Assembly: GCF_000143415.4 (NCBI RefSeq)
Contig: NW_003314276.1
Coordinates: forward strand, 22,105 to 86,104
Origin: Selaginella moellendorffii
Taxonomy: Eukaryota; Plantae; Lycopodiophyta
Reading direction: 5' to 3'
DNA length: 64,000 nt
Shown here: piece by piece, positions 12,584 to 53,890 of the stretch
Layout of the letters: each line of letters begins with the position of its first letter
How positions within the stretch are numbered: position 1 is the first letter of the stretch
The notes under the pieces: model-generated
What the model saw: the letters and a program-made list of their open reading frames with translations, nothing else
Told to the model about the DNA's origin: nothing
Databases searched by the model: none
Translations under genes and position numbers: made by a program

Positions 12584-13731
12584 GGCAGTTTTCAACAAAG
12601 AAGAGAAAAATACATGCAGATCTAAAAATGGTCCTGTCAAATGCTAACAAGCACCTAGGCTTTTCCACCATTGTGTCGAAAGTGAAGGTCGATGTGGTAG
12701 AAGGCCATTTTGAGCGTAGATAAACTCCATTCAACCACGGACACCTCATCAAACAAATTTGAACTGTGCAATAGGAATTTAAAATAAATAAGTTAATCCA
12801 TGCCCTTCCATTGGTTCACATAAGGCTAGTAACTCCAGTTGCAAGCTAGCATATTTCCGTTGGGAAACAATTGGGAATGTCAATTATGATCGAAAGGGTG
12901 GTCTAAATCCAACAGCACCTCTAACAACATGGAGTCCCTACATGGTTATGTTCAATACCATGGACAGTGGCGCTCTTGCCATGGTATGGGGGACGAAGTC
13001 AGCCTCCAACAATGGTATACAAACTATGTATTCCCAATCTGTATCTTTTTCTCCCAAGGGGCTCCAAAACGTCAATACGGACAACGACGCTCCCACATCT
13101 CTGCAACGTGATGTTCATCACCCTGAAGATGAACTGGAGTGTTTCCCTCCACGCGTGAATCCCAGTGGGAGATTCATGTCCATGCACAAGAGTCCAAAGG
13201 AGATGCGGTCCTGGACTGAGGAAAACAAAATTGTTGATTGTGACCTCCCTTCTTGTTTTGTCTGGGCGCCCATGACGGGATCCATATAGATGAGGTGTTG
13301 GTGGTATGTGTATTGCAAGTTCCTAGTCCCAGGGGAAGATTTTGGCTTTGCTCAGGCTCACCAGTAGCCAGCTTTCCAAGGTCTCTTGGTGGTGAAGAAT
13401 GTAGTTGATGGGGCTCGGGCGCATCATTCCGACCACGTCCATAGGACAGTATTGGGAGGAGTGGGAGGTTGAAGGAGATCGCAGAACTGGGCAAGGATAT
13501 CTAGCTGCTTCTGCGTTTCTAGTCCTACGATATCGGACTTGGCTGTGAGCGTGGTAAAATGCTAATTTACATGCTCATATGCGAGGATGTAGACACTTCC
13601 AGAAGATTCCAATCTCAAATCATGCTCACCAACATCAACCGGCAATGGCTGTTTAGAATCTTGAGAACTGCACATCATAGGCAAGTACTTCAAGCTTGGT
13701 GCTCATTATGACAAGCTCATCCGCGTCCAAT

Positions 13732-15640
13732 CACGTCTTCTCAGTTCCTATGCCCCAGAAGATGTCAATTAATACCTCATTACAAGTGTATGTTTAAGTT
13801 TTTTTTAAGCCAAACTTGAAGCATAAGACCGACTTCTCTAAAAAAAATAGGCATACCTCTCTTTCCCTGGAAACGCTTCTCTAACAAAGTAACGGCCTTA
13901 GTCAAACTATTCAATTGGGTCACAACTGCCTAAATAACCATTATTTAAATGCAAGTAGAATATTAAATGTTACATGCCTGAAATGCCTTTTCGTAATCTT
14001 CTTCTCCTGGCTTTAAAACATCAGGTGATGGTTTCTCGGTCTATTAAAATGTCATGTCAGCTCCATGTCTACATTATTATAATTACCTCTTCCTTTTTTA
14101 AGTTTTCTTTCTTCTCGTTAGTGTTAGTTTGAGATTCCCATTCAGATTTCTCAGAATTAGGGTAAGTTATGGTAGTTGCTGCATCATTCTCGTGTAAAGC
14201 ACTAGCTAGAATCCCTGTAAATCAAACTAGGTTATATACTCCCCGAAAACAACCGTACCGGGATATAGGCCACGAGAGGCAGTAAAGTTACTTCTCCAGA
14301 TAACTACCTGTTACTAATTATAAGCGTTCACGTTTTGAAATTCATTACCTGCTCATCAGCGCTTCCTGATGCAAAAAAGTCACCCGATTTGCAAAATTCA
14401 GCGCAATTCGTAGATCCTTCATGACCCTTCAACATATACAAAAGCTGGCCTTCTCTTAAATCCCAAAGCTGCTGCAATTGTAAATTTACAGTAACCAAAG
14501 CCATAGGGTTGTTACCCTTAGTCCACCATCGTCACATGTTGAGAGAAGGTAATCGCCAGAGGGATGGAAGGACACTGTGTTTACAGTTCCTGCGTCAGCA
14601 GCGTAATGTTGAACCAATCTTTTGCTTCTAGTATCCCAAATCTGCTACATTTGAGGCATATTAGTACGTCAACATTTCCAACGTTTCGTGGACACCTGAA
14701 TGCATTCGTCAGTTCCGCAACTTGCAATGCACTTGCCTTCGGGGTGAAACCTAGCTGACCGCACCATCCTTCATTTGTCAAAGTGAATAACATTCTTTGC
14801 TTGATCTACAGATTTCCATACCCGAGTATGTCTATATACTGGTGAATACACTGACGGCTTTCAACATCCCAGAGCCGAATAGTTTTATCATCAGATCCTG
14901 ACACAATTGATCTAAGAGAAACTAATGATAAATTTACACCAGTGACTACTTAACCTGCCATCATTGTTGAACTCTGCAGACCTAACCCAGTTCAGATGCC
15001 CAAGTAAAGCAAATGCAAATTTTTCTGTCTCCACATCCCAGACCTTTCAATGGTTCACAATACGAAACAAAGAAGCCAAAAACAGAAGCTAAAGAATACC
15101 TTCATGCATTTATCATCGGAGGCGCTTAAAAGGTATTCGCCACTTGGATTGAAGGCTATTGATCTAACAGTTCCGGAGTGTCCCTTAATAACAGTAGACT
15201 TTGCATACCTGGAACATGAAATTTACTGTATATATATTTAAAGATGTAAATACTGTATACACTCTTGGAATCCATAAGCGTACAGTCTTATCCTTAGATC
15301 CGGAAGCAACAACAGTGTCTAGAGGAGAGACCGCTACAGAACATATGGGAGCCTGCCAAACATTTCCTGTTCTTACTTCACATTCCCCGTTTTAATAACT
15401 GACCTTGTGTCCTTGTAAACAGTATGGCCTGCGTATTTGCCTTCGAGATTCATGACACGATTGAAGTCCCCACATTAAAACATTGCCGTCTGCACCTCCA
15501 GATACTAGGTGCTTCATGTAAGGCCGAAAGCATATTGAGGAAACTCCAGAAAAATGCATTCTCCCTCCTCTGTGTGCTGGGTAGGAGATCACAAGCGAAG
15601 GGTCCTCACAGTGAGGAGGAATGGCCCTAGTTTCTGCCAT
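13732..15640 (-). CDS. POC1: POC1 centriolar WD40 protein, apparently intact, 12-13 exons
   Basis: Exons 15640-15404, 15352-15261, 15208-15100, 15043-14955, 14911-14822, 14768-14696, 14641-14516, 14468-14349, 14307-14259, 14214-14087, 14040-~13978 and ~13929-13857 splice in frame. The product has an EDPSL N-terminus, seven WD40 repeats (ASGSKDKTVRLW, GHLNWVRSAEF, SFHPSGDYLL, WDLREGQLLYMLKGHEG, ASGSADEQVVIWRSNF) and a C-terminal Poc1 coil (VTQLNSLTKAVTLLEKRF). The stop position is uncertain (about 13780 or 13732). Confidence 0.92.
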
Positions 15641-16379
15641 CTGCCAAGAAGTGAATGTTGAACCTAGAAGGAAATTTTTAAAAGAAATTCATTCTGCAGA
15701 GCAAGAAAACGTATATCCGCCTTCCCATTGGTCCCTGTAATGCTTATGTCATGTCTTCTTCATAATGTAGTGCAGATGTAATGTCTGGAGGATCACCTAA
15801 GACATTTTAATAGCACAAGAGTGAGGAGAAAGGCACTATCTCCGAGTATTTGTTCTAGAAAAGTCGTGCCACTGGAATGTAACAAAAAAAGCATGCATAA
15901 AAAAAAAGAAGCAAACCAAGCATTTTCAGACCAAGCATACCAGAATCAGGTCTATATTTGAGTCTCAAATCGAGCATGCTCACTCACAGGCAGCCATTGC
16001 CAGCAGCACGTGGGATTAACCAGTTTGCTATCTGCTTGCTCAAAAATGGAGTGGACGAGGGAATCAATTTGATCTAAGGTGCTAATTCTTTTCCTGGTTG
16101 CTGACATGTGAAGGGAAGGATTTTAAAGCAGGAACAACCTTCACAAATTATAAAGAATGTTCATGGCTGCTAACTGCCAGGCATCACCTGGTTATGATCT
16201 TGAACAGTGCGTATTAAATCCAAGACTTATATCATTGAGGACTTGATAAATGCATTCTCCATGTGAGTTGCACTTGATTCCTAGGTAGCAATGACTTCTG
16301 ATCATTGACAAGTTGAGATCAATGCCACCGCCACTTAAGAATACTTACTGGTTTGGGAGCACCAAATATCTGCTTCCCT

Positions 16380-20059: not shown

Positions 20060-21460
20060 TTGAGGGGTGAAAGCCCAAAGCGTGTGTCTCCCAAGGGGGG
20101 GTGTGGGGGCGGGATTGTAGGGGTTTCCAAAAGTATAGTGGGGATAGTGTGAGGTCTAGGAACTAGTCTTGAAAGAACTCTCCAGTGGTGCTTCCAAATT
20201 GACTTGAGGTTGAGATTGGGGTTGGGGGGCCTTGGGTGGGAGTGAGCATGGACTTGGGTGGTACACTACTTATAATTCGGTATTCTTTACTGCCATGACG
20301 GCAGGAGGTCAGTATTGCAGGACCTGTTATTAGTTCGCACTTGAGCTAGTTGAGAAACTAGTCATTGACCGTGCATTTAAATGGGATAAACAACAGGTAG
20401 GAACCCTATGTGTTTCTTGCTGAGCATACTCGGCCCGGTTTGAGAAACTCCTATCATTGGCTTGCATTTGCTAATATCAAGAACCCCCGTGATATTGAGA
20501 TTGGTCCCTCAATATTTGCTAGATGATAGCTTACTGTATCTACCAAACATCCTCGCTATCATGCCCTTTGTGTTAGTCTCATTTCAGTCCCAAATATTAT
20601 TTATAGAAAGTGTCTAAATTCGCTCATTTGGCATATCTACGGAATGTAGAGATTGTCCTAAACACAATCGTGTTCGTCCCATGTCTAAATTCGCAATGTA
20701 GCACCATTCCATNNNNNNNNNNNNNNNNNNNNNNNNNNNNNNNNNNNNNNNNNNNNNNNNNNNNNNNNNNNNNNNNNNNNNNNNNNNNNNNNNNNNNNNN
20801 NNNNNNNNNNNNCGCGAACTCTATTTGGCTTTGTTTTGCATGCTAGTCCTGGCATTGGGATGCTGGTTGCTTTAGGACTGTTCCAAGTTGCTTTGGGCTC
20901 CTATACCTTCGCTCTTTGGGCTGTATGCTTAGGAGTTGCTCTGTGGTCCGGTTTTGTCACTCTTTGGCTCCATGCTTGGGAGTTTGGCACCGTTCCTTCA
21001 TTCAGTGGCCCAAGGCCTTGAACCTTGGGTTTCACACCACTGTCCTATGGACACATGGCATATAACACATGGCAAATGGAGGGTTTAGGTTCTGCTTTGT
21101 GGTGTTTTCCTATGGTAAATCACCATAGGATAAAGGGTAAAACCCATGTGCGCTACAATGCCCCACATGAGTACTATACACGTCATTGGTCCTCACCCCT
21201 TCCTATGGGCTTCGGCCTTCCCTTCAAGATGGAATTGGGGGAGTAGGGGCACCCATATCAGGCTGTTAGGCCACGATGTTTCTCTTTGGGGTCCTGAAGC
21301 AAAGTGATGCACTGAAAGCTTGGGATTTAGAGGGTCCTATAATCAAGTTTTATTGTACTAAGGGAGTTTATGAATCTAAAGGTTTGGTGTGCTTGGCTTC
21401 TTGTGCTTGTAGGGAGTGTAGTTAAACCTTAAGTCCACTCATAACCTCCATAATTCCTAT
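20060..21460 (+). mobile_element. GypsyA-type LTR fragment interrupted by a family D LTR (about 20265-21157)
   Basis: 20060-20260 and 21158-21460 match the GypsyA LTR; the middle matches the family D LTR ending GTGCGCTACA at 21157. Confidence 0.75.
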
Positions 21461-27314: not shown

Positions 27315-27369
27315 GTATGTAATCCAGTCCCTAACTCAAAGTTACTCATTACACGAGCAACTTTGGTAG
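27315..27369 (+). other. Candidate 55-nt intron between Gag and protease (GypsyA)
   Basis: GAG|GTATGT donor, CCCTAAC branch-like motif, TTTGGTAG acceptor; removal gives RVVRDIY*. Confidence 0.6.
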
Positions 27370-29988
27370 AGAGTTGTTCGTGACATCTACTAGCCCTCCG
27401 AGGGAAGCTCAGAGGTAGCTTTGTTAAAATCCTTATTGACACGGGTGCTTCGGATAATTTTGTGGCTGCAGACATAGTCCGGCAAGCCGGACTAACAGTG
27501 CAGCGGCTAGGCGAACCAAGGACTATAGAGTTTGTTCAAGGTAGCCAAAGCACCGATGAGGTACTTCGACAAGCGAGAGTCGAAGTGGGGACTTGGAAGG
27601 TGGACATGGATTTCACCGTGTTGGACATGGCGGGATTTGACGTGATCTTCGAAATGGACTGGTTCAATCGATTTGTGGTAGCCCTGCATGGACAAGGTAG
27701 AAACCTTGTGGTACTGGCGAATGCCCAAGGAAGAAGATCTAGGGTGGAGGCCCAAGATCTAAAGGTAGGGCAAAGCAAGGCCAAAGATTCCTGCTTAAAT
27801 CTGGTGTCCACGAGAGGACAACTCACTAAAGGAACTAAGGCGGCCTTTTTGTGCTTACTCTCGGTGAAGAGTGACAAAAAGACAGGAACGGAAGAAGTAC
27901 CTTTAGTGATCCAGCGGGTGTTAGACCAATTCCAGGATACCATGCCAGAGGAGCTACCGGCGGGGCTACCCCCAGCACGACGGATAGAACATAAGATTGA
28001 GCTCGTCAAGGGTGCTGAGGCAGTGGTTCGTCCCCCTTATCGTTTGAACGAAAAAGAACTCAAGGAGCTCAAGTGCCAACTAGAGGAGTTGGTGGACAAA
28101 GGGTATGTTAGGTTGAGCAAGTCGCCGTATGGGGCGCCGGTGTTATTTGTGAAAAAGAAAGATGGATCTATGTGTATGTGCATAGACTACTGGTTGCTCA
28201 ACAAGTATACAAAGAAGAACAAGTACCCTTTGCCAAGGATTGAGGACCTGTTCGATAGGTTGGGAAAGGCAAAATACTTCTCGAGGATTGACCTAAGGTC
28301 AGGATACTACCAGATTAGGGTAGCCGAGGAAGATGTCGAGAAGACAACCTGTCAAACGAGGTATGGGAGCTTTGAGTTTCTGGTGATGCCCTTCGGGCTA
28401 TGCAATGCGCCGGCAACGTTTTCGGCGCTAATGAACCACATCTTTGTACCCTATCTGGATCACTTCGTGGTCGTCTATATCGACGACATCCTGATCTATA
28501 GTGAGACGCTAGAGGAGCATGCCGAACACTTGGCGAAGGTGTTTGAGAAACTAAGGGAACACAAACTGTATGCTAAAGAGAGCAAATGTGACTTTGCTCA
28601 ATAAGAGGTAAAGTTTCTCGGGCATGTGGTGGGCCAGGACGGGCTCAAGGTGGACCCGGAGAAGGTCCAAGCGATCCAGGAATGGGAGCGACCATCCAAT
28701 GTACACGAGTTGAGGGCATTCCTGGGGCTATGCAACTACTATCGAAAGTTTATCAGACACTATTCGAGAGTAGCCCTGCCCTTAACGGACCAAACAGGAA
28801 AAGGGGAGATGGTGTGGACAGCGGAATGCGAGGTGGCATTCGTCCACCTCAAAGGGAAGTTGAGGAAGGCTCCCGTATTGGCATTACCAGACTTTGGTAA
28901 GGACTTTGAGGTAGAAATGGATGCTTTGGACTTTGCGTTGGGCGCAGTTTTGAAGCAAGACAACCATCCGGTAGCGTTCTTCTCAAAGAAGCTGGACAAG
29001 GCTCAACGGAAGTGGCCTGCCCACGAGAAGGAATTGTTTGCGGTGGTCAAGGTGTTCAAGGAGTGGCGACACTACCTTGGGAGACACTTCAAGGTTTACA
29101 CGGACAATGTGGCAACGAAGCACTTCTTGTCACAGCCCGACCTAAGAGGGAAACAAGGTCGGTGGGCCAATGCCTTGGCTGAGTTTGATTGCGAGATTCT
29201 GTACAAGCCTGGGAAGAGCAACATCGTGGCGGATGCGCTAAGTCGAAAAGCGAGCTTGAGGTTGGCAATATCCAGCGCAACAGCAACCTTTTGGGACGAT
29301 GTGCGGACAGCATATGAGAACGATGGTTTAGCACAAGAAGTGTTGCTAAAGAATCTAGAGGCACGAGAAGCTCACCAGAGAGGTGAGCTGCCAACGGAAG
29401 AGAAAACGGGCTATGCGGAACGCAACGGACTCATCTATTACAAGCAAACGAGGGTGTATGTTCCAGAAGGGGAACTAAGGAAGGTGGCCTTAGAAGAGTG
29501 TCATGACGGACCTCTTGCGGGACACGGCGGAGTGCCCAAGACGATGGGCTTACTCAAAAGGAAGTACCATTGGCCAGATATGGCTAAGGACGTCCAAGAC
29601 TATTTAAAGACATGTCCAACATGTCAGCAGGTAAAAGCCGTGACTAAGGCTAGTGGGGGCTTGTTGCAAAGCATCCCAATTCCAGATCGCCCGTGGAAAT
29701 GTCTTACGATGGACTTCATCACGGGACTCCCTCCAAGCGAGGGGTTTGATGTGATATTCGTGGTGGTGGACCGATTTTCGAAAATGGCACATTTCATACC
29801 CACCACAACAGAGGTGGATGTGGAAGGTGTGGCGAAGCTATTTTTCGAACAAGTGGTTCGAGTGCGGGGAAGACCACAAGAGATCATCTCAGATCGAGAT
29901 AAGATCTTCACCAGTAGGTTCTGGAGGACTCTCCTAGAACAGTATCGCACCAAGTTGAAATTCAGCACAGCCTATCACCCACAGACAG

Positions 29989-30034
29989 GTATGGGGTATT
30001 AAGTCAAGTTGTTGGTACTAACACTTCTTGACAG
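29989..30034 (+). other. 46-nt spliceosomal intron in the integrase core (GypsyA)
   Basis: CAG|GTATGG...TACTAAC...TTCTTGACAG|AC; removal exactly restores [16 protein letters not shown]. Confidence 0.9.
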
Positions 30035-30452: not shown

Positions 30453-30504
30453 GTAAAGATGCATGTACTCCTGTGAATGAATTGATCTTGAGTTCCTTAA
30501 GCAG
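30453..30504 (+). other. 52-nt spliceosomal intron just before the integrase GPY motif (GypsyA)
   Basis: AAG|GTAAAG...TTCCTTAAGCAG|G; removal exactly restores RKLTQ-R-FAGPYEI. Confidence 0.88.
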
Positions 30505-39345: not shown

Positions 39346-39577
39346 TGTGAGACACAAAATCCCTAGGCCCCAAAGTGGAGTTGGAAAGGGTGCCACGTGG
39401 TAGTGGCCGAAACGAAAGCCAAACGAGCGTAACACATTTGGACTAAAAGCTTTGACTTGGAAGGTCGAGAGCGGGAGTGGAACTCCTAACAAAGTGCTCG
39501 AGGAACAAGCACGAAGCGAGCAATAAGTGAGACTCCAAAAAGGGACCCAAAAGGACCAACACATGACACGTGGAAGT

Positions 39578-40146
39578 GTCCGAGATGGAGTCCGAGATGG
39601 AGTCCGAGGTGGAGTCCAAGGTGGAGTCCGAGATGGAGTTTTAGATGGACCCGAGTTGGAGTCCGAGATGGAGTCCGAGGTGGAGTCCGAGGTGGAGTTC
39701 GAGATAGAGTCCGAGATGGAGTCCGAGGTGGAGTCCGAGGTGGAGTCCGAGGTGGAGTCCGAGATGGAGTCCAAGATGGAGTCCGAAGTGGAGTCCGAGA
39801 TGGAGTCCGAAGTGGAGTCCAAGATGGAGTCCAAAGTGGAGTCTGAGATGGACCGAGACGGAGTCCGAGATGGAGTCCGAGATGGAGTCCGAGACGGATT
39901 CCGAGATGGAGTTCGAGATGGACCGAGATGGAGTCCGAGATGGACCTGAGATGGAGTCCGAGGTCGAGACCAAGACCGGGACCGAGACCGGGACCACGAC
40001 CGGGACCGAGACCGAGACCGAGACCGGGACCGGGACCGAGACTGAGACCGAGGCGGAGGCCGAGACCGAGCCCGAGCCCGAGTCGGAGTCGGAGTCCGAG
40101 TCCGAGTCTGAGTCCGAGTCCGAGTCCGAGTCCGAGTCCGAGTCTA
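39578..40146. repeat. Hexamer-based minisatellite (GAGTCC/GAGATG/GAGACC) within the family C LTR
   Basis: Seen directly; also at 50638-51195 and 51700-52035. Confidence 0.95.
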
Positions 40147-43100
40147 AGAGGGTGAAAGCCCAAAGCGTTTGTCTCCCAGACCCTGGGGGGTTGGGTGAGC
40201 TCCAAAAGTATAGTAAGGGGGAGGACTACAGTGGAGCCAGTTTGGCCAGGAAAGGCCAGTTTGGCCCAGGAAGGCCAGACCCAGTGTTGGGTGATGAACT
40301 GACCATTGGGAAGTCCAAGACTAGAGTGAATACGGACCGACAAGCGGGGTAGCTTGGTGAAGTGTTCAAGAGCCACCTCTAGTTCCCCCGGGAGATCGAC
40401 TGGCCGATGCTCCCAGTCCAAGTGTGGGTGGCACTACCTACTTGGATACTAGGCGTGGCTCAACGGAACCTTGCTCTAAGCCCATGGCTAAAGCACACAA
40501 AGGCGGAAGGCGGGGAGAGTACTCAGGTGGCTCGCGTAAGGCCACGGTGTTCCGAAGTGTTGTCCCCAAGTCCCAGACTGTGGAAAGGAAAAGGAGCAGT
40601 CCTTTGGTGTGGTGGCCAAGGATACGGTCATGTGGTGAGGAAGTCCCAGAGGACCATGGGACTTAGTGGTCAGGCCTGTGGGCCCCAATCCAGTGGCAGT
40701 GTTGGCAAATACGGCCAAGGGCAAAAAGGGATTTAGTGGGGACTGACAGAGGGATATTGGGGAAGGCTATTCCCCTTGTCAGTGGGCATCCTAAGGATGC
40801 TAAGGAGTGGATCTGGGAGGACCACTCACGGATGGTTGGCCCAGTCTTGGAGAGATGGGATTGTGATGCAAGTGGTATTGGACCACTAGTGCAGCAAAGG
40901 TGAATGGGCATGGCCTTAGCGTAACGGGCTGATATGTTAGTGGTACCTTTGGGTGCGATGTGGTGGATAGAAAAGGGGCCAGTAAGGGAACGACTTTGGG
41001 ATTTTAGGAACAGTATAAGGGTTTCCTCAGAGAGTTGAGAATGTGATCCAGATGAGCATTTGACTTAGCAAACTGGCTGATGTAGTTGTGGTAAACAACT
41101 ACAGTTGGGATCATGGGAAAGATGCAGACTCCAAAATAATAAAGGAGTCACAAGATAATCCGCATATAGTTGAGGCTGGTGCTCATGAATTTGAGACCAG
41201 AATTGATGACCATGAGAGGTCAAGTACAGATGAGGGCAAGAGCCCTCGAAATGGTAGCTGGGGCTACTTTTTATAATGCTGGAACGAACCCAAGGAGTTG
41301 GGGGTGTGCTCAAAGAATGAGTCAGCATTCTCATCATGGGGACGGATAGTCCTAAGGGGCAAAAGGCAGCCCACAGAGAACGGGAAATAATGAAGTGTTG
41401 GAGTAACACTTGCAAGATGGTCCTTATAAGTAGGACATGAATACATGAAGTTGTATTTGAGTGAGCTGGCACCTCAAAAATAAGACCTTATGGGTCATTG
41501 GTTTAGCAAAGTCCAAAAATGCTGGATGACTCAAGTGGGGTCAAGGAATGGTCCTAAGGGATTGGTTGAAGCATTTAGACTGAGGTGTATGCTACCCCAT
41601 GAGGTATGGGGAGGATCATAAGATCCAAGTATGAGAACAGGAGATATCTCATTGATGGTAGAATGTGCCATACTAAAGTTGTGGGAAAGATGTTCCTAGA
41701 AGAAAGCAACTTTGGCCCAGAGTTGGGGACAAATATTATGGTGCGGTGCTAACGGATAGTTAGCATGAGGCATAACTATATTGGTCTTGGCAAAGATGTA
41801 GACACTAATAAGTAGTGTCATAAGGATAGGCTCGTGGGGCCGATGGTGTGGAGACACCAAATGTGCCAAGGTGTGATACCTTGAGGTTATGATGGTGGGT
41901 TCATAAGAACCCCTTGCCAAGGGAATCCCAACGGAAGCGGGAAAGGCATGGCCTAAGCTGGAAGGCATGCGGTTGGAGTGTGGTGACCCAGATAATGATG
42001 GTGTTGTGGAAGCACCAAGCAATGAGTTGTAGGACTTGACAGCTATGGGGCAACTAAGCAAGAGGTGCAAGATAATTGGTTAAATGGGTAAAAGGTAGCT
42101 ACCCAAGACTTCTTAATGGTATAAGGAAGTTAGATATACCCTTACGGGGGATAAATTGTTTATGTTGCGATATAGTAAGTCAATGTCGTAAACGGGAATG
42201 CTCATTGTCCGGAGGCCATCATTGGGACACCCAAACACTCTAGAACACTAGGAGGTGGTGTTTCGTGTCGCAAGGGCAACAGATAAGGCCCAAGGGACTA
42301 AGTCCCTAACGAATGATGGATAGAAGGTGCTATCCAAATGTCCAATGTTGTTGAGACAAAAGAAGACTGTCTACCCGAATTGGACAAAGCCAAAAATGGA
42401 ATTTTGGCAAGGCTAGTGATGGGCATGTAAAAGCCCATAAGCAGCAACGTTAACCCCGGTATGTGGGATTATAAGGTGAGCATGCCCAAGATTGAGGAAC
42501 CACTCCCTAGGCTATTGGGTAGGTTCATCCCTAAGCATACTTGCTAAGGCATAGTAAAATGTGCAAAGCTATCCTCCTAGTTTGGAGGAGAATAACCAAA
42601 GGAAACATATGGGGCCAAAAGGCAAGTAATATTGGGATGCAACTAAACTATAGAAATTGAAGGGCATATCTAATGGTGGTTATGCAAGTTGGGAGTGGAG
42701 AATCAAGAGGGTGCTTGAGGATGTTGTTGCTAGCAACTGTGAGGCCATGGAGAGTCTAAAATATGGAATTGTCTGTGTTAGACTATGTGGCAACTATAAA
42801 GCTTGCGAAAAGGAAGGCCTTAGCAAGCTAAGGGACAAAGTTCCTTCAAGGTTCCCAAAGATGATTCTAGGTAGCTTAGTACCTAGAAAGGCCAAAGGTA
42901 AATGGTTCATGGAACGCACGAAATCAGAGTGGCGCAGCAGAAGTGTGGTCTTGAATCTTGCCATGAGGCAAGGCTATCAAGGTTAGGGAAGTAGTTCCCG
43001 AGTGTTCAAAGAGAGGGCTTTGAATGAAAGTCCATGGTCAAGGACTTTCACACTTATGCAGGAACCATGTTACAGTGGTCGGAGGACTTGCCAAACGAGA

Positions 43101-43513: not shown

Positions 43514-44519
43514 GCACGGTTAGATTGCTTAGAGTGAAAACTCGGCATATCTAACTTGAACACTTTGGTGCAAAGGGCACCGAGGACGTGGTGAATGAGA
43601 TGGGGACACCCAAGTCTCAATTGCTATGGATCCTTGACTAGAGTGAATACGGACCGACAAGCGGGGTAGCTTGGTGAAGTGTTCAAGAGCCGCCTCTAGT
43701 TCCCCTGGGAGATCGACTGGCCGATGCTCCCAGTCCAAGTGTGGGTGGCACTACCTGCTTGGATACCAGGCGTGGCTCAATGGAACCTCGCTCTAAGCCC
43801 ATGGCTAGAGCACCCAAAGGCGGAAGGTGGGGAGAGTACCTAGGTGGCTCGCGTAAGGCCACGGTGTTCCGAAGTGTTGTCCCGAAGTCCCAGACTGTGG
43901 AAAGTTAAAGGAGTAGTCCTTTGGTTTTGTGGCCAAGGATACGGTCATGTGGTGAGGAAGTCCTAGAGGACCATGGGACTTAGTGGTCAGGCCTGTGGGC
44001 CCCAATCCAGTGGCAGTGTTGGCAAATACGGCCAAGGGCAAAAAGGGACTTAGTGGGGACTGACAGAGGGATATTGAGGAAGGCTGTTCCCCTTGTTGGT
44101 GGGCATCCTAAGGATGCTAAGGAGTGGATCTGGGATGACCACTCACGGATGGTTGGCCCAGTCTTGGAGAGATGGGATTGTGATGGAAGTGGTATTAGAC
44201 CACTAGTGCGGCAAAGGTGAATGGGCATGGCCTTAGCGTAACGGGCTGATATGTTAGTGGTACCTTTGGGTGTCGGTCTTGGGACCGGACACGTGGAGCA
44301 CTTGGACTAAGTGCAAGGGATGAATGGCATAGATGCCATCCTCGGGGCTAGCAAGTCCCAAGTCCTGAATTGGACTTAAGGAGGTTGTGAATAAGACTCC
44401 TCCAAGTGGTCAAAGGTGTGGTTAAGTGACTAAAGTAGAATGGAAAAATTAGTCGCTTACACATCCTTAGCCAAGGCGGAAGGCCACCAAGACCAAGTCA
44501 GGATCAGTGGAAGCTCACT

Positions 44520-46585: not shown

Positions 46586-48248
46586 ACTCCCGCTTGCGTG
46601 CCTGTCTTTGTTCTGCGTCCGGCTTGGGTCTAAGCCCAAGCTCCAGACCATACTAGTTGGTGGAGTACTCATATCCTCACGTTAGGCCACTGGTATGCCA
46701 AAATTGTGCCAAACTCCGTCTAACACCATTTTGTGTGCAGGTGCTGGATATGGGGAGCTGGTGCTCATGGGATTGTACCGGACCCTTGTTTCGTAGCGCA
46801 ATGGGCTTGGAGTTCGGCTCCAAATTTAGGTGCGCTACATTTGGTATTAGAGGATTGTCTTAGTGATTCCTATCCAACTTTTGTCGGATTTTTTGACTCA
46901 AGTTGCATACACAGAGACTTTTCTAGTAGATCCAAAGTGACCTATGTAGGATTAGTTGGATTGCACCATTTGATAAGAATGTTGTAAGCATGTTTAGTTA
47001 TTGATAAAGACAAGCGTGCAGCTAGTGGGATGGTGAATAGGAACCGTGTTGATGATGCTGAAACCTCTAGATAGGCAAATCAAGAGGAGGAAACTCTTGT
47101 TAGAGATGCTGCGGAAGAGGCTGAGGCCAAGTTAGAAGAGGATGAGCCAGATGTTGCGGCATTGCAGCTTACGGCTCAGGAAGTGGAGATCAAGAATTTG
47201 CGAAGGGAGATTCGCAAATTGAAGAAGGAGAACAAGAAGAGGAAGAAAAAAACTGAGGTAGCTAAACCAACTAAGCCTAAGCAACTGGACTCCTCCTCAA
47301 GTTCTGAGGACGATGAACTTCTGCAGCCACCCTCAGTTGCACGAGTTTCAAAGTTCAAGCCTCTGAAACCACCCTATTTCAGAGGCATGCGGAACTATCA
47401 GGTTTTGGAAGACTAGGTCAATGATATGGAAAATTATTTCATAGTGGCAGACGTAGATGATCGTATGAAAGTTGCATGTGCACAATCCTTTCTCACCGAT
47501 CATGCCAAAACTTGGTGGCGCCAGGTGTGTGTTAAAAAAGGGCAGACTAGAAGTTGGACCAAGATCGGTCTCGTATCCGTAAAGAATATTTGCCGGATGA
47601 TCTTGGTCTGAGACTTCGCACAGAGCTGCGATGGTTAAAGCAATGAGGGGACCTTATGGATTACGTTAATGCGTTTGCTCAGAAGCGCATTATGATTGCA
47701 AATATGAGTGACGAAGATGCTCGAAGTTATTTTCTAGAGGGTTCAAGTTCATTTTCTCGCAATGAGATTTTGAAGTTTAAGCCAAAGACATACCTGGAGT
47801 GTAAGGAGGCAGTGCGCAAGTTGCCTTTAGTCACTTGCTCATGGAACAATATTAGCAACCTTATGCTGGTAACTCGAATAAGAATAGAAATTCTGGGAAT
47901 AAGCAAGGTGATCGGAAACAAAGGGTGGAACGTAGGTACCGCCCTAGGGGCTCACAAGCTATGGTTAATAAAGGTGGTGGTGGTTGGAGACCACCAGCAG
48001 CTTCTTCTGGTCCTATGCCCTCTATTCCTCCTCCTGGTGGGTACAAGCAGCAGCAACTTGCAAAACCTGCTCCTAGTGAAACGGGTAGTGTGGGTCATTG
48101 CTTCCATTGTGGAGAGTCAGGACATAGGTCCTCGGAATGTCCCAACAAGCATAAGACAAGGTTTCGTGTTAATGTCATGAGGGAAGACAGTGGTGGTGAA
48201 GCCGAAGGGGTTGACAAGTTGGTCAATGCAGACTATGAGGAAGAAGAG

Positions 48249-48288
48249 GTGAGTAACTTTCATTGCTTTGCTCAAGCTTTTCTTGCAG
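48249..48288 (+). other. Candidate 40-nt intron between Gag and protease (GypsyB)
   Basis: GAG|GTGAGT donor and TTTTCTTGCAG acceptor; removal gives SMQTLIR*. Confidence 0.65.
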
Positions 48289-50406
48289 TCAATGCAAACA
48301 CTGATCCGTTGATGTATCTGGTAGGCTTTATCCGTGGATACCGAATCCGAGTGATGATTGACACTGGAGCTATGCACAGTGTGATATCCGAAGACTTAGT
48401 TAAGTTGTTAGGATTAAATGCTGAGGAAATGTCGCCTAAGCACTTCTGGTTTGCGGAAGGTGGGCAAGTAGCCAGAAAGTTTGTGAGTGATGTTCCAATA
48501 AAGATATCCAAGTGGAAAGAAAGAGTGGACTTGGTAGTGTTGAAGATACTAGATTTTCAAATGGTATTTGGTATGGACTTCTTCAACAAATATATAAAAG
48601 GGATTTATGGTGTTGGACAAAGTTGTATCACATTGAAATTAGAAGGATATCCCTATGTATCCTTCCAGTTGCAAAACTATTCCTCAAAGGATTGGGATGC
48701 AAAGTTCCTGACTGCGAGGGCCACTCAAAAAGAAACTAAGAGGGGATGTCAGACCTTTTGGGTTCAAGTGATGGAAGCTAAGGGTGTGGGTGACTCCGTT
48801 CAAAATCGTGACGGAGTTGATGCTGTACCAACGAAGATATTGGAGTTGTTGCCGCAGAATCAGGACATCTTTCTGAAGGATTTACCACCAGGGCTACCTC
48901 CTAGCCGTGAGGTTGATCATTGGATTGAGGTTATTCCGGGTTCTAAACCACCTACAAAGGCTCCGTATCGATTGAACATCAAGGAGATGGCTGAACTCAA
49001 GAAGCAACTCACGGAGCTTCTTGACAAAGGTCATATCCGACCAAGCAAGTCACCTTATGGAGCGCCAGTCCTTTTTGTTATAAAAAAGGATGGAACCATA
49101 AGGATGTGTATTGACTATCAGGCACTCAACAAGATCACGGTTAAAAATAGTTATCCTGATGACTTGTTTGACCAACTCTTAAAGGCTAAGTGTTTTACGC
49201 GACTTGATTTGCGGTCCGGGTATCATCAGATACAGGTGGTAGATCAGGATGTGGAGAAGATAGCCTTTATGACTCAATATGGATCTTATGAGTTCTTTGT
49301 CATGCTGTTTGTGTTATGCAATGCTCCAGCAATGTTCAACACTATGATGGATAGAATATTTGGAGATTATTTGGACGCATTTGTTGTCCTATATATCGAC
49401 GATGTTCTAGTCTTTAGTGAAACGTTGGAGGATCATTGGAACACTTGGATTTAGTGTTTCAGAAGTTGCGCAAACACAAACTGTATGTTAAGGAAAGTAA
49501 ATGCAGTTTTGGTCAATTGCGTATAAACTTTCTCGGACATATAGTTGGTGGTGGCGTGATTGAGGTCGATCCAAAGAAGGTGGAAGTGGTGAAGTCCTGG
49601 GAAGTTCCGACCACTGTATCAGATGTTCATTCCTTTCTTGGTTTGGCAGGATACTATCACAAGTTTGTCCGCAATTTTGCAAGAATTGCTCTTCCGTTGA
49701 CTGAATTGACGAAGAGTAGTATTCCGTTTCATTGGACACCAGCTTGTCAGCGTGCTTTTGTATGGTTAAAGGAGATCTTGACTACAGTTCTTGTTCTCAG
49801 GATTCCAAATCTTGATAAACGCTTCGAAGTGCATTGTGATGCATCTGGCTATGCTATCGAGCTTCACTTCTCAGTTTGGGATAGGCTTATATTCTATAAG
49901 CAAGAAAGATTGTATGTTCCCTCTAAGGATCTACAATAGTTATTTCTGTGGGAGCATCATGATGTTCCAGCAGTGGGACATGGTGGGAAGCGAAAGACTC
50001 TAGCTTCATTGAAAAAGGGATTTTTCTAGTCTGGTATGGAAGGTGATGTAGCGGATTATGTCTGTTCCTGCCCTATATGCCAGCAATGTAAGTGCAGAAC
50101 TGAGAAGCAGGCTGGAAAGTTGCAGTGCATTCCAGCACCGGCATGGCCATTTCAAAGTGTGACACTTGATTTTGTCACTTCTTTGCCAAAGTCTAAGGGT
50201 TATGATACTTTGATGGTGGTTGTGGATTGGTTGTCAAAGATTGCACACTTCATTTCAATTGTGGGAACAATAAATGCGAAACAAGGAGCAAAGCTCTTTT
50301 TCCATGAAGTAGTGCGAGTTCGTGGTCTTCCTGAAGAAATGATGTTAGATAGAGATTTGAGGTTTACAGGGAAGTTTTGGGGGACCCTATTCCAGTTGTT
50401 TGGTAT

Positions 50407-52262
50407 TGTGAGACACAAAATCCCTAAGCCCCAAAGTGGAGCCGGAAGGGCGCCACATGGTAGTGGCCGAAGCGAAAGCCAAACGAGCGTAACACGTTTG
50501 GACTAAAAGCTCCAACTTGAAAGGTCGAGAGCGGGAGTGGAACTCCCAACAAAGTGCTCAAGGAAGAAGCACGAAGCAAGCAATAAGCAAGGCTCCAAAA
50601 AGGGACCCAAAAGGACCAACACATGACACGTGGAAGTGTCCAAGATGGAGTCCGAGATGGAGTCCGAGATGGAGTCCAAGATTTACCCGAGTTGGAGTCC
50701 GAGGTGGAGTCCGAGATGGAGTCCGAGATGGACCGAGATGGAGTCCGAGATGGACCCGAGTTGGAGTCTGAGGTGGAGTCCAAGATGGAGTCTGAGATGG
50801 ATCGAGATGGAGTCCGAGATGGAGTCCGAGATGGACCCGAGTTGGAGTCCGAGGTGGAGTCCGAGATGGAGTTCGAGATGGACCGAGACGGAGTCCAAAA
50901 TGGAGTCCGAAGTGGAGTCCGAGTTGGAGTCCGAGATGGCGTTCGAGATGGACCAAGACGGAGTCCGAGATGGAGTCCGAGATGGACTGAGACGGAGTCC
51001 GAGATGGAGTCCAAGATGGGCCAAGATAGAGTCCGAGGTTGAGACCGAGACCGGGACCGAGACCGAGACCGAGACTGAGATCAGGACCGAGACTGAGACC
51101 GAGGCCGAGGCCGAGACTGAGCCTGAGCCCGAGTCTTTGTCCAAGTCCCAGTCCGAGTTCGAGTCCCAATCCCAGTCTGAGTCCAAGTTCGAGTTTGAGA
51201 GGGTGAAAGCCCAAAGCGTTCATCTCCCAGACCCTGGGGGGTTTGGTGAGCTCCAAAAGTATAGTGGGGGGAGGACTGCGGTGGAGCCAGTTTGGCCAGA
51301 AAAGGCCTGTTTGGCCCTGGAAGGCTATACCTAGTGTTGGGTGATGAGCTGCCCACTGGGAAGTCCAAGGCTAGAGTGAACACGGACTGACAAGTGGGGT
51401 AGCTTGGTGAAGTGTTCAAGAGGCGGCTCTAGTTCCCCCGGGAGATCGACTGGCCGATGCTCCCAGTCCAAGTGTGGGTCGCACTACCTACTTGGATACT
51501 AGGCGTGGCTCAATGGAACCTCACTCTAAGCCCATGGCTAGAGCACCTAAATGCGGAAGGTGGGGAGAGAACCCATGGTGTTCCGAAATGTTGTCCCGGA
51601 GTCCCAAACTGGGGAAAGGAGGAGGAGCAGTCCTCTAGTGTAGTGACTAACGATACGGTCACATGGTGAGGAAGTCCCAGAGGACAATGGGACTTAGTGG
51701 CCGGACCCGAGTTGGAGTCCGAGGTGGAGTCCGAGATGGACCCGAGTTGGAGTCCGAGGTGGAGTCTGAGATGGAGTCCGAGATGGACCGAGATAGAGTC
51801 CAACATGGAGTCCAAGATAGACCCGAGTTGGAGTCCGAGGTGGAGTCCGAGATGGAGTCCGAGATGGACCGAGATGGAGTCTGAGATGGAGTCTGAGATG
51901 GACTAAGACGGAGTCCGAGATGGAGTCCGAGATGGACCGAGATGGAGTCCGAGAAGGATCCGAGATGGAGTCCGAGGTCGAGACCGAGACCGGGACCGAG
52001 ACCGGGACCGAGATCGAGACCGAGGCTGAGATCAGGACCAACGGGCCGAACTGTCAGTGGTACCTTTGGGTGTCAGTCATGGGACCAGACACGTGGAGCA
52101 CTTGGACCAAGTGCAACGGTTGAGTTGCACGGATGCCATTCTTGGGGCTAGGAAGTCCCCAAGTCCGGAATAGGACTTATGGAGGTTGTGAGTGAGACTC
52201 CTCCAAGCGGTCGGAGGTGTGGTGAAGTGACTAAAGTAGAATGGAAAAATTAGTCGCTTACA
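50407..52262 (+). mobile_element. Family C solo LTR inserted in GypsyB integrase
   Basis: TGTGAGAC...CGCTTACA with TSD GGTAT/GGTAC; the flanks rejoin as [21 protein letters not shown]. Confidence 0.93.
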
Positions 52263-53890
52263 GGTACCAAGTTGAAGTTTAGTACGGCTTATCATCCTCA
52301 AACTGATGGGCAGACCAAACGCGTGAATGCTCAAGTTGAGGATTATCTGCGGTACTATGTCGTGGCGGACCAACGTGACTAGGTTGAGCATTTGGATACA
52401 GCAGAAATCTGTTATAACAACACATTTCACAATGCTATAGGCTGTTCTCCATGGGAGATGCTGCAAGGGAATGCTCGTGGGGTTCCTCAACAGATTGTTG
52501 TACCAAAACCAATGACCAAAGTGTTGGTTCCAGACGTTGAGACTTATGCAAAGCAGCTATGCCAACGTTGGTCTCATGCTACTGAGGCAATGGGCAAAGC
52601 TCAAGATAGGTATCGATGTGATAAGGATCAGCATCGTCAAGATCATGTATCCTATCAAGTGGGAGATTAGGTGTGGCTATCTTCCCGGAACTTGAACATT
52701 AAGGGCTCTTTGTCTCGGAAGCTCTTGCCGAGATATGTTGGACCCTATTGGGTGTTGAAACGACTTGGTGATGTATCCTATCAGTTGGATATTCCATAAG
52801 AGATGTCCGGCCTTCATGATGTGTTTCATGTTAGTTTGCTGGCCCCATATCATGAGGATTCTGGCTACTCTTAGGATGTTCATCCAGCTCCAGATGTTAT
52901 TGATGGGAAACCGGAGTATAAGGTTGAGGCTTTCCTTTTGTGCCCTAAGGCATGTAGTGGTTGAACCAAGGAATATCTAGTTAAGTGGAAAGGTTACCCA
53001 ACTTGTGAATCAACTTGGGAACCTCTTAGGAATCTTACACATGCTCGTGAGCTTGTCACGGAGTATGCAAATTGTAATAAACAATCGGTTTTGTAAATAT
53101 TCTAATAAATCTTGCAAATTAATAAAGTAATATATTTCTATAAATCAAAATGTCATTTCTCTCGTTCGTTAGTACTTGGGTCAGTTTTGGCAGGCTGACT
53201 TCGGCACTTGGTGATGACAAACTCATGATGTTGACTTGCACTTGCTAGTGTTGGGAACCTCGGTGATATTAAGACTAGTCCCTCAATATTTGCCAGATGA
53301 TAGCTTACCGTGTTTGCCAAACACCCTCGCTATCATGCCCTTTGTGTTAGTATTATTTCCGTCCCAAATGCTATTTATGGAAAGTGTCTAAATCTTCTTA
53401 TTTGGCATATCTACAGAATGTAGAGATTGGCCTGAACACAATGGTGTTCGTCCCGTGTCCAAATTCGCAATCTAGCACTATTCCATATTTGGTAAGTTTC
53501 AAACTTGTTCCAGAGACCAACTCCTGGTACTAAAGGAGGTTTGGGGTGAAAGCCCAATGGGATGTGGAGGGTTCCAAATGTATAGTAGGGATAGTGGTTA
53601 GAATGCATGTCCGACCACCTGAGACATTAGTTTGGCTCTTGCTGGGCTGTGTCGCTCTTTGTTCTGCGTCCAGCTTGGGTCTAAGCCCAAGCTCCACACT
53701 GCTCTAGTCGGTGGAGTACCTTCCTCCTCGCATTAGGCCAACGATATACCAAAATTGTGCCAGCCTCTATCTGACACCTTTTGGCATGCAGATGCTGCAT
53801 ACAGGGAGCTGGTGCTCATTGAATTGTAGCGGACCCTCATTTTGTAGTGGAACGGGCTTGGAGTTCAGCTCCAAATTCAGGTGCGCTACA

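Follow-up and report, generated by a model that had tools for sequence, protein, structure and literature searches.

A candidate Gag-terminating micro-intron at the protease start of a Ty3/gypsy chromovirus of Selaginella moellendorffii

Most plant Ty3/gypsy retrotransposons carry Gag and Pol in one reading frame, and little is understood of where the Gag excess that they require comes from. Only for Ty1/Copia elements has splicing been shown to cut Gag short. In barley BARE1, reverse transcription polymerase chain reaction (RT-PCR) revealed the splicing of a GT-AG intron of 104 nt located where the protease (PR) begins; once it is removed, the frame changes and Gag stops within a few codons (Chang et al. 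2013, PMC3735527). Similarly, in EVD/EVADE and other Arabidopsis Ty1/Copia elements, alternative splicing of the protease region yields an shGAG RNA, also shown by RT-PCR, while conserved splicing was not seen in Arabidopsis Ty3/Gypsy (Oberlin et al. 2017, PMC5580714). A 2025 review describes plant long terminal repeat (LTR) retrotransposons as generally intron-free, Ogre and EVD excepted (PMC12786077); as cited there, Steinbauerova et al. (2008) reported a partly spliced intron in the coding region of Ogre, a legume Ty3/gypsy element of the Tat lineage. Here we consider GypsyB, a Ty3/gypsy element at about 46591-53890 of a 64,000-nt stretch of the Selaginella moellendorffii genome (hereafter the window: assembly GCF_000143415.4, contig NW_003314276.1, positions 22,105 to 86,104 of the forward strand; coordinates are those of the window unless said otherwise), in which a 40-nt segment between Gag and protease has the layout of such an intron.

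In GypsyB, a single frame runs from the CCHC knuckle of Gag (48099-48140) through the protease DTGA (48360) into the reverse transcriptase (RT). This open reading frame (ORF, 47925-49454) has Pfam matches to zf-CCHC, RVP_2 and RVT_1. The codon GAG at 48246-48248 is followed, by direct reading of the letters, by a candidate donor GTGAGT beginning at 48249, and the segment closes with CTTTTCTTGCAG at 48288 (in longer form, ...GCTCAAGCTTTTCTTGCAG up to that position), 37 codons past the CCHC motif and 37 ahead of DTG. The donor is in phase 0, after a complete codon (position mod 3 = 0) of the CCHC-PR-RT frame. At 40 nt the length is 3n+1, and the segment is open in the Gag-Pol frame, where reading through it gives 13 residues. 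Taking the 40 nt out leaves TCA ATG CAA ACA CTG ATC CGT TGA, that is, the seven codons SMQTLIR and then the stop TGA at 48310-48312. Canonical GT-AG borders at the end of Gag and the start of protease are thus combined with a length that is not a multiple of three, a frameshift and a near stop, as in introns of the BARE1/EVD type. A preliminary description of this DNA had reported the segment, its phase, its open frame and the SMQTLIR-TGA ending, and every letter and number of that report holds. The parts are the following (the slash marks the splice border).

48249 to 48288, plus strand: candidate 40-nt micro-intron GTGAGT...CTCAAG...CTTTTCTTGCAG, phase 0, 42.5% T, 6/7 donor matches, 8/11 pyrimidines.
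48246 to 48254, plus strand: donor GAG/GTGAGT, with the purine-rich run GAGGAAGAAGAG ahead of it, as read from the letters.
48271 to 48288, plus strand: possible branch point CTCAAG (48271-48276), then a pyrimidine tract and the CAG acceptor, as read from the letters.
48289 to 48312, plus strand: the SMQTLIR codons and TGA, from the reading frame, read only once the 40 nt are removed.

That this is a genuine Gag-terminating alternative micro-intron of the family, of the BARE1/EVD type and in a chromovirus, is plausible, with a likelihood that we place just short of even. GypsyB is an old copy, now dead, from a Selaginella chromovirus family that is very abundant and encodes Gag and Pol in a single frame; 48249-48288 would then be a retained, alternatively spliced micro-intron where Gag ends and protease starts. 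Unspliced RNA would be read through the 40 nt, as the protease N-terminus, into Gag-Pol, and the same RNA would serve as the genome. Excision by the host spliceosome would shift the frame by +1 and end Gag seven codons on, at 48310-48312, leaving a message for Gag only that would supply the excess over Pol needed by a single-ORF element. What the sequence shows is the anatomy, its effect on the frame and how rare such signals are; the occurrence of the splicing, and its role in setting the Gag:Pol ratio, are inferred.

The signals at the two borders are rare. Donors were scored as matches to MAG/GTRAGT (7 variable positions) and acceptors by how many of the 11 positions from -14 to -4 are pyrimidines, position -3 also having to be one; pairs of 38-130 nt were allowed, multiples of three excluded. 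The GypsyB pair scores 6 for the donor and 8 for the acceptor and is the sole pair of this strength in the whole element. Over both strands of the window (128 kb), only 8 donors have an equally strong frameshifting pair, or about 0.009 per 150 nt, and the stricter pattern G/GTRAGT occurs 11 times, of which only three have a strong acceptor within 35-120 nt. When the linker was recoded synonymously, keeping its peptide and drawing codons from the usage of GypsyB and of GypsyA (a second chromovirus of the window, treated below), 0.53% of 20,000 recodings reached the strength of the GypsyB pair. The segment is also rich in T (42.5% vs 17% upstream; top 5.6% of 40-nt windows in the ORF), and its GC content is not unusual.

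The same letters would need no intron if splice-like codons had met by chance in the linker and protease N-terminus, with no useful splicing and with Gag:Pol set after translation or not at all. Tf1 of fission yeast is a single-ORF element in which the Gag:Pol ratio is controlled after translation. We regard chance as a serious explanation, at somewhat under an even likelihood. It has to account for a signal strength expected in only about 0.5-1% of linkers and found in none of the 327 RT windows described below. Several observations, given here and in the following paragraphs, weigh against a functional intron. The strength thresholds were fixed after the site had been seen, and the fair chance figure for the site is therefore nearer 1-3%. 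The acceptor tract falls on the F-L-A codons of the protease, within TTT CTT GCA G/TC, which codes for FLA(V) of its conserved N-terminal motif; in the variable linker, it is a Val codon that supplies the GT of the donor. An alignment with 28 relatives places the region over that motif, G-R-V-[FY]-A-[LM]-T; set against L075, among the closest relatives found, QAFLAVNAN of GypsyB faces KVIALNAN. By these alignments, the 40-nt segment is coding sequence and not an insert, which fits a retained, also-translated intron as in BARE1 and equally gives chance a foothold. Chance also gains from the downstream hydrophobic strand, in which out-of-frame stops are common.

A survey of relatives adds to these points. 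It comprised 84 loci (4 found by protein identity, the other 80 in metagenome contigs scanned with a profile); together with GypsyA and GypsyB, the Asp of DTG was located by tblastn in 69 of 86 sequences. In 66 of these the sequence reached far enough upstream, and the 200 nt preceding DTG were compared with 200-nt RT windows, at paired donor and acceptor thresholds.

Thresholds 6 and 8: linker 2/66 (GypsyB itself and L050), RT control 0/327.
Thresholds 5 and 8: linker 4/66, RT control 16/327.
Thresholds 5 and 7: linker 6/66, RT control 34/327.

Across these 66 Ty3/gypsy sequences, no general enrichment of strong frameshifting GT-AG pairs in the linker over RT was found, which favours the chance explanation. 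The nearest relatives found, L075 (60% of amino acids shared with GypsyB), L012, L035 and L020, have no frameshifting pair; their linker is very short and in one frame. In L003 and L004, gag and pol occupy separate frames. The lineage-wide expression strategy proposed in the preliminary description is thus not borne out: scored against RT, the linker is not the richer in such pairs at either of the two looser settings. The survey argues against a broad rule, not against one specific to Selaginella.

One relative looked at first sight like a parallel. In L001, an unrelated chromovirus on an ENA metagenome contig, a segment before the protease runs, in contig coordinates, from CAG/GTATGG at 1821 to ...TTGTCAG at 1893 (its end can also be given as TTTGCTCTACTTGTCAG); it is 73 nt long (3n+1), in phase 0 and followed at once by TAA, the region including the stop being 1821-1896. 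We discounted it, pairs that strong being present in 4.9% of RT control windows. L001 has no integrase intron. As a separate observation, L075, L012 and L035 carry, at about 2450-2460 of each, a strong donor-like AAG/GTAATT or AAG/GTACTT on the Lys-Val codons of the conserved protease motif. Its only matching acceptor defines a 60-nt in-frame segment; codons of the motif can imitate splice sites.

GypsyA offers a comparison within the same genome.

27315 to 27393, plus strand: GypsyA comparator intron, seven codons and TAG; 55-nt segment at 27315-27369, in-frame TGA at 27381-27383.

Its candidate runs from GAG/GTATGT at 27315 to ...TTTGGTAG at 27369 and is followed by RVVRDIY and TAG (27391-27393), so that the 55 nt, seven codons and stop previously described are all as claimed. 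Like GypsyB, GypsyA is a chromovirus with a phase-0, 3n+1 candidate and seven codons before a stop; it differs in its 55 nt, in a weak acceptor and in two frame-breaking integrase introns, of which GypsyB has none. The coincidence of position and phase stands. The exon resumes 24 codons upstream of the Asp of DTG in GypsyB and 23 in GypsyA, and both acceptors split a codon after its first base, in elements that share 40-43% of PR-RT residues. Placement within one codon and in the same phase counts against chance. That the two intron sequences are unrelated needs qualifying, both being coding sequence in the Gag-Pol frame at the relatives' conserved N-terminal protease motif. As to the further claim that the sites are more than chance GT/AG pairs, the GypsyB site is statistically unusual by the window and recoding frequencies given above; the GypsyA candidate is at chance level and scores only 5 and 5. 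Such pairs occur at 0.22 per 150 nt of window, and about 14 donors in the 4.8 kb of GypsyA carry one as good, as a chance origin would predict.

Composition speaks differently of the GypsyA candidate. Its GC content is 40% vs 50.3% for coding sequence (lowest 3.7% of windows), which is intron-like, matches the low GC of the two integrase segments of GypsyA and tells against chance. These segments, at 29989-30034 (46 nt) and 30453-30504 (52 nt), themselves score just 5/7 and 5/6, so that an intron with weak signals is nothing unusual in GypsyA. We propose tentatively, leaning slightly away from the idea, that a phase-0, 3n+1 micro-intron for a Gag-only mRNA has been retained at the protease start in each of two Selaginella chromovirus families with only some 40% of PR-RT residues in common.

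The GypsyA copy is young, with LTRs 98-99% alike, and is not open into Pol, the in-frame TGA at 27381-27383 lying 12 nt past the candidate intron. Judged from its letters, even unspliced RNA of this copy would halt before Pol unless the TGA were read through. We take GypsyA to be the published SM1-Galahad of S. moellendorffii. The reconstruction of SM1-Galahad is a single ORF of 3885 bp (Novikov et al. 2012, PMC3350952), from which it follows that the TGA is probably private to this copy. In the integrase part of GypsyA there is a further intron-like pair at 29631-29685, CAG/GTAAAA...CCAATTCCAG (55 nt, 3n+1, 8/11 pyrimidines), which lies upstream of the two integrase introns and outscores both.

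GypsyB itself is unbroken at both places where the GypsyA integrase has its introns, one following HPQT and the other RKL(T/L)x(R). It reads through there, including SRKLLPRYVGPY, and gives one tblastn segment at 52263-53066. GypsyB is thus not otherwise an intron-bearing element, which also belongs among the points against a functional intron at the protease start. Length is another. In a POC1-like WD40 gene on the minus strand (about 13000-15700), introns of 51, ~52, 56, 43, 51 and 44 nt were inferred from reading frames and repeat continuity, not from RNA. At 40 nt, the GypsyB segment falls just short of all introns so far inferred for the window, which measure 43-56 nt, as would suit a chance pair. 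The preliminary description had named the minimum spliceable length of the host as a check on its claim; the segment lies under the inferred sizes, and its splicing in this host is still possible, at the edge of the range. On the other side, micro-introns are normal in the host (43-56 nt in the POC1-like gene, 46 and 52 nt in the GypsyA integrase), and the signals of the 40-nt segment are stronger than those of the POC1-like introns, which have weak donors (GTCAGT, GTATTC, GTTAAG, GTGTCC, GTAACA), weak pyrimidine tracts and one acceptor that is apparently AAG.

RNA data bear on the same question. Three raw RNA-seq runs (~1.4 billion letters read from each) and one DNA run were compared with 46900-50500. 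RNA depth is zero over 48231-48351 in the three RNA-seq runs, hence there is no junction read, and the 48248^48289 joint is absent among the 15 of 69 joints listed. Of the 18 RNA-type contig runs available for S. moellendorffii, not one contains the stretch. This negative, at an RNA depth of zero, and the Arabidopsis Ty3/Gypsy result (PMC5580714) both stand on the side of chance. Elsewhere in the element, a few RNA reads of <90% identity fall in RT and RNase H, and all three runs show a pile at 47213-47247, a purine-rich (GAA/GAG) run in gag. On either side, reads of the pile run on into sequence unrelated to the element; its source is therefore a host transcript sharing the repeat, not GypsyB.

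In the DNA run the family is very abundant, with 21,381 contig pieces at >=82% identity (at least 82%), and one 287-nt contig (84% identity) crosses 48130-48415 free of gaps. Within the segment, 48270 G>C is the sole near-fixed family difference among the 40 of 856 variable places listed. Protein collections were searched by word with the 509-aa ORF, with nothing above about 62% identity, and with a 120-aa query across the linker, aimed at short ORFs, with no match; an exhaustive search of 1.84 billion representatives returned nothing above about 61% identity.

A third possibility is that the segment is spliced as a cryptic host intron without adaptive value, giving a truncated, non-replicating message rather than a tuned Gag:Pol switch, either as a side effect or at a cost to the element. 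Introns that are very short and weakly marked are removed in this host, and a pair as strong as GTGAGT/polypyrimidine-CAG might be used even if never selected; the absence of the feature from the nearest relatives would also suit such an origin. A harmful site would, however, be expected to be lost from a family as large as this one, the design equals the useful one of BARE1 and EVD, and the position coincides with that of the GypsyA candidate. We consider a non-adaptive cryptic intron improbable.

The domain order of GypsyB is Gag(CCHC)-PR-RT-RH-INT (RH, RNase H; INT, integrase) between LTRs of ~250 bp, both with the end GCTACA, and with a primer-binding-site (PBS)-like TGGTATTAGAGG.

46591 to 46853, plus strand: 5' LTR (about 46591-46839, end GCTACA) and degenerate tRNA-Met-type PBS TGGTATTAGAGG (46842-46853).
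47030 to 47924, plus strand: gag remainder, starting at 47030, with frame changes near 47565 and 47815 plus stops.
48099 to 48140, plus strand: Gag CCHC zinc knuckle (PF00098).
47925 to 49454, plus strand: open frame of Gag C-terminus, linker, protease (DTGA 48360) and RT (ORF and Pfam).
49455 to 50404, plus strand: RT end, partial RNase H and N-terminal part of integrase, with ~160 codons deleted at 49858/49886.
50405 to 52262, strand not assigned: nested 1.86-kb insertion (TG...CA, 12-nt tandem arrays) splitting integrase; related copies at 39346-40955 and 43636-44461.
52263 to 53093, plus strand: C-terminal part of integrase (SH3_Tf2-1, PF24626) and chromodomain (PF00385, 44.9 bits), with several stops.
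53637 to 53890, plus strand: 3' LTR, ~84% identity to the 5' LTR.

The chromodomain (cut-off 25.1 bits) lies at 52965-53093 and makes GypsyB a chromovirus. Pfam also matches RT_RNaseH_2 and, faintly and below the cut-off, Integrase_H2C2 (13.9 bits); integrase homology was obtained by tblastn. The copy is old and dead and cannot function now, as seen from the two gag frame changes and stops, the loss of ~160 RNase H/integrase codons near 49858 (supported by loose ends at 49857 and 49860), the nested insertion and the stops in the integrase tail. Some family contigs have one extra base at both places of gag frame change (near 47565 and 47815), which suggests that intact members read gag together with pol in a single ORF and thus need some way to make excess Gag.

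Three other accounts of the element were ruled out. GypsyB is not truncated in integrase and devoid of a chromodomain, the nested insertion splitting integrase and the chromodomain following it. The repeats 43636-44461 and 51371-52262 are copies of the nested repeat and not LTRs of GypsyB, whose actual LTRs have GCTACA as their last letters, up to 46839 and 53890. Ribosomal frameshifting or readthrough is not its strategy, the frame from CCHC to RT being open throughout. The nested repeat is packed with 12-nt tandem units translating as SEMESEMD/RWSPRWSP-like runs; its other copies in the window are 85-96% alike, and a solo LTR from a different family is one possible identity for it. The window also holds an assembly gap (run of N) at about 20710-20810.

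Should the Gag-terminating micro-intron be real in both families, it would be the first splice-based control of Gag:Pol in Ty3/gypsy, with introns of 40-55 nt, and the shGAG strategy of Ty1/Copia would have arisen or persisted in the other LTR superfamily. It would be, moreover, another intron surviving replication through RNA. Should chance be the explanation, the locus would be a useful warning that conserved protease-motif codons can imitate splice sites.

Compared with described systems, GypsyB resembles BARE1 in its single gag-pol ORF and in a short intron candidate just past Gag that the polyprotein frame reads through, has a length not divisible by three, is more U-rich than its flanks and would leave a Gag-only message. 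BARE1 differs in belonging to Ty1/Copia, in its 104 nt vs 40 nt and in having its splicing shown by RT-PCR. EVD shares the principle that splicing around the protease brings a frameshift, an early stop and a dedicated Gag mRNA; excision of its intron, in contrast, eliminates the entire protease domain and is tied to premature termination, and EVD-type introns are ~3x the length of host introns. In Ogre, splicing joins frames and is needed for the downstream part of Pol, whereas in GypsyB it would end translation after Gag. What the two would have in common is a Ty3/gypsy coding region that retains a spliceosomal intron and has it spliced out only in part (Steinbauerova et al. 2008, cited in PMC12786077).

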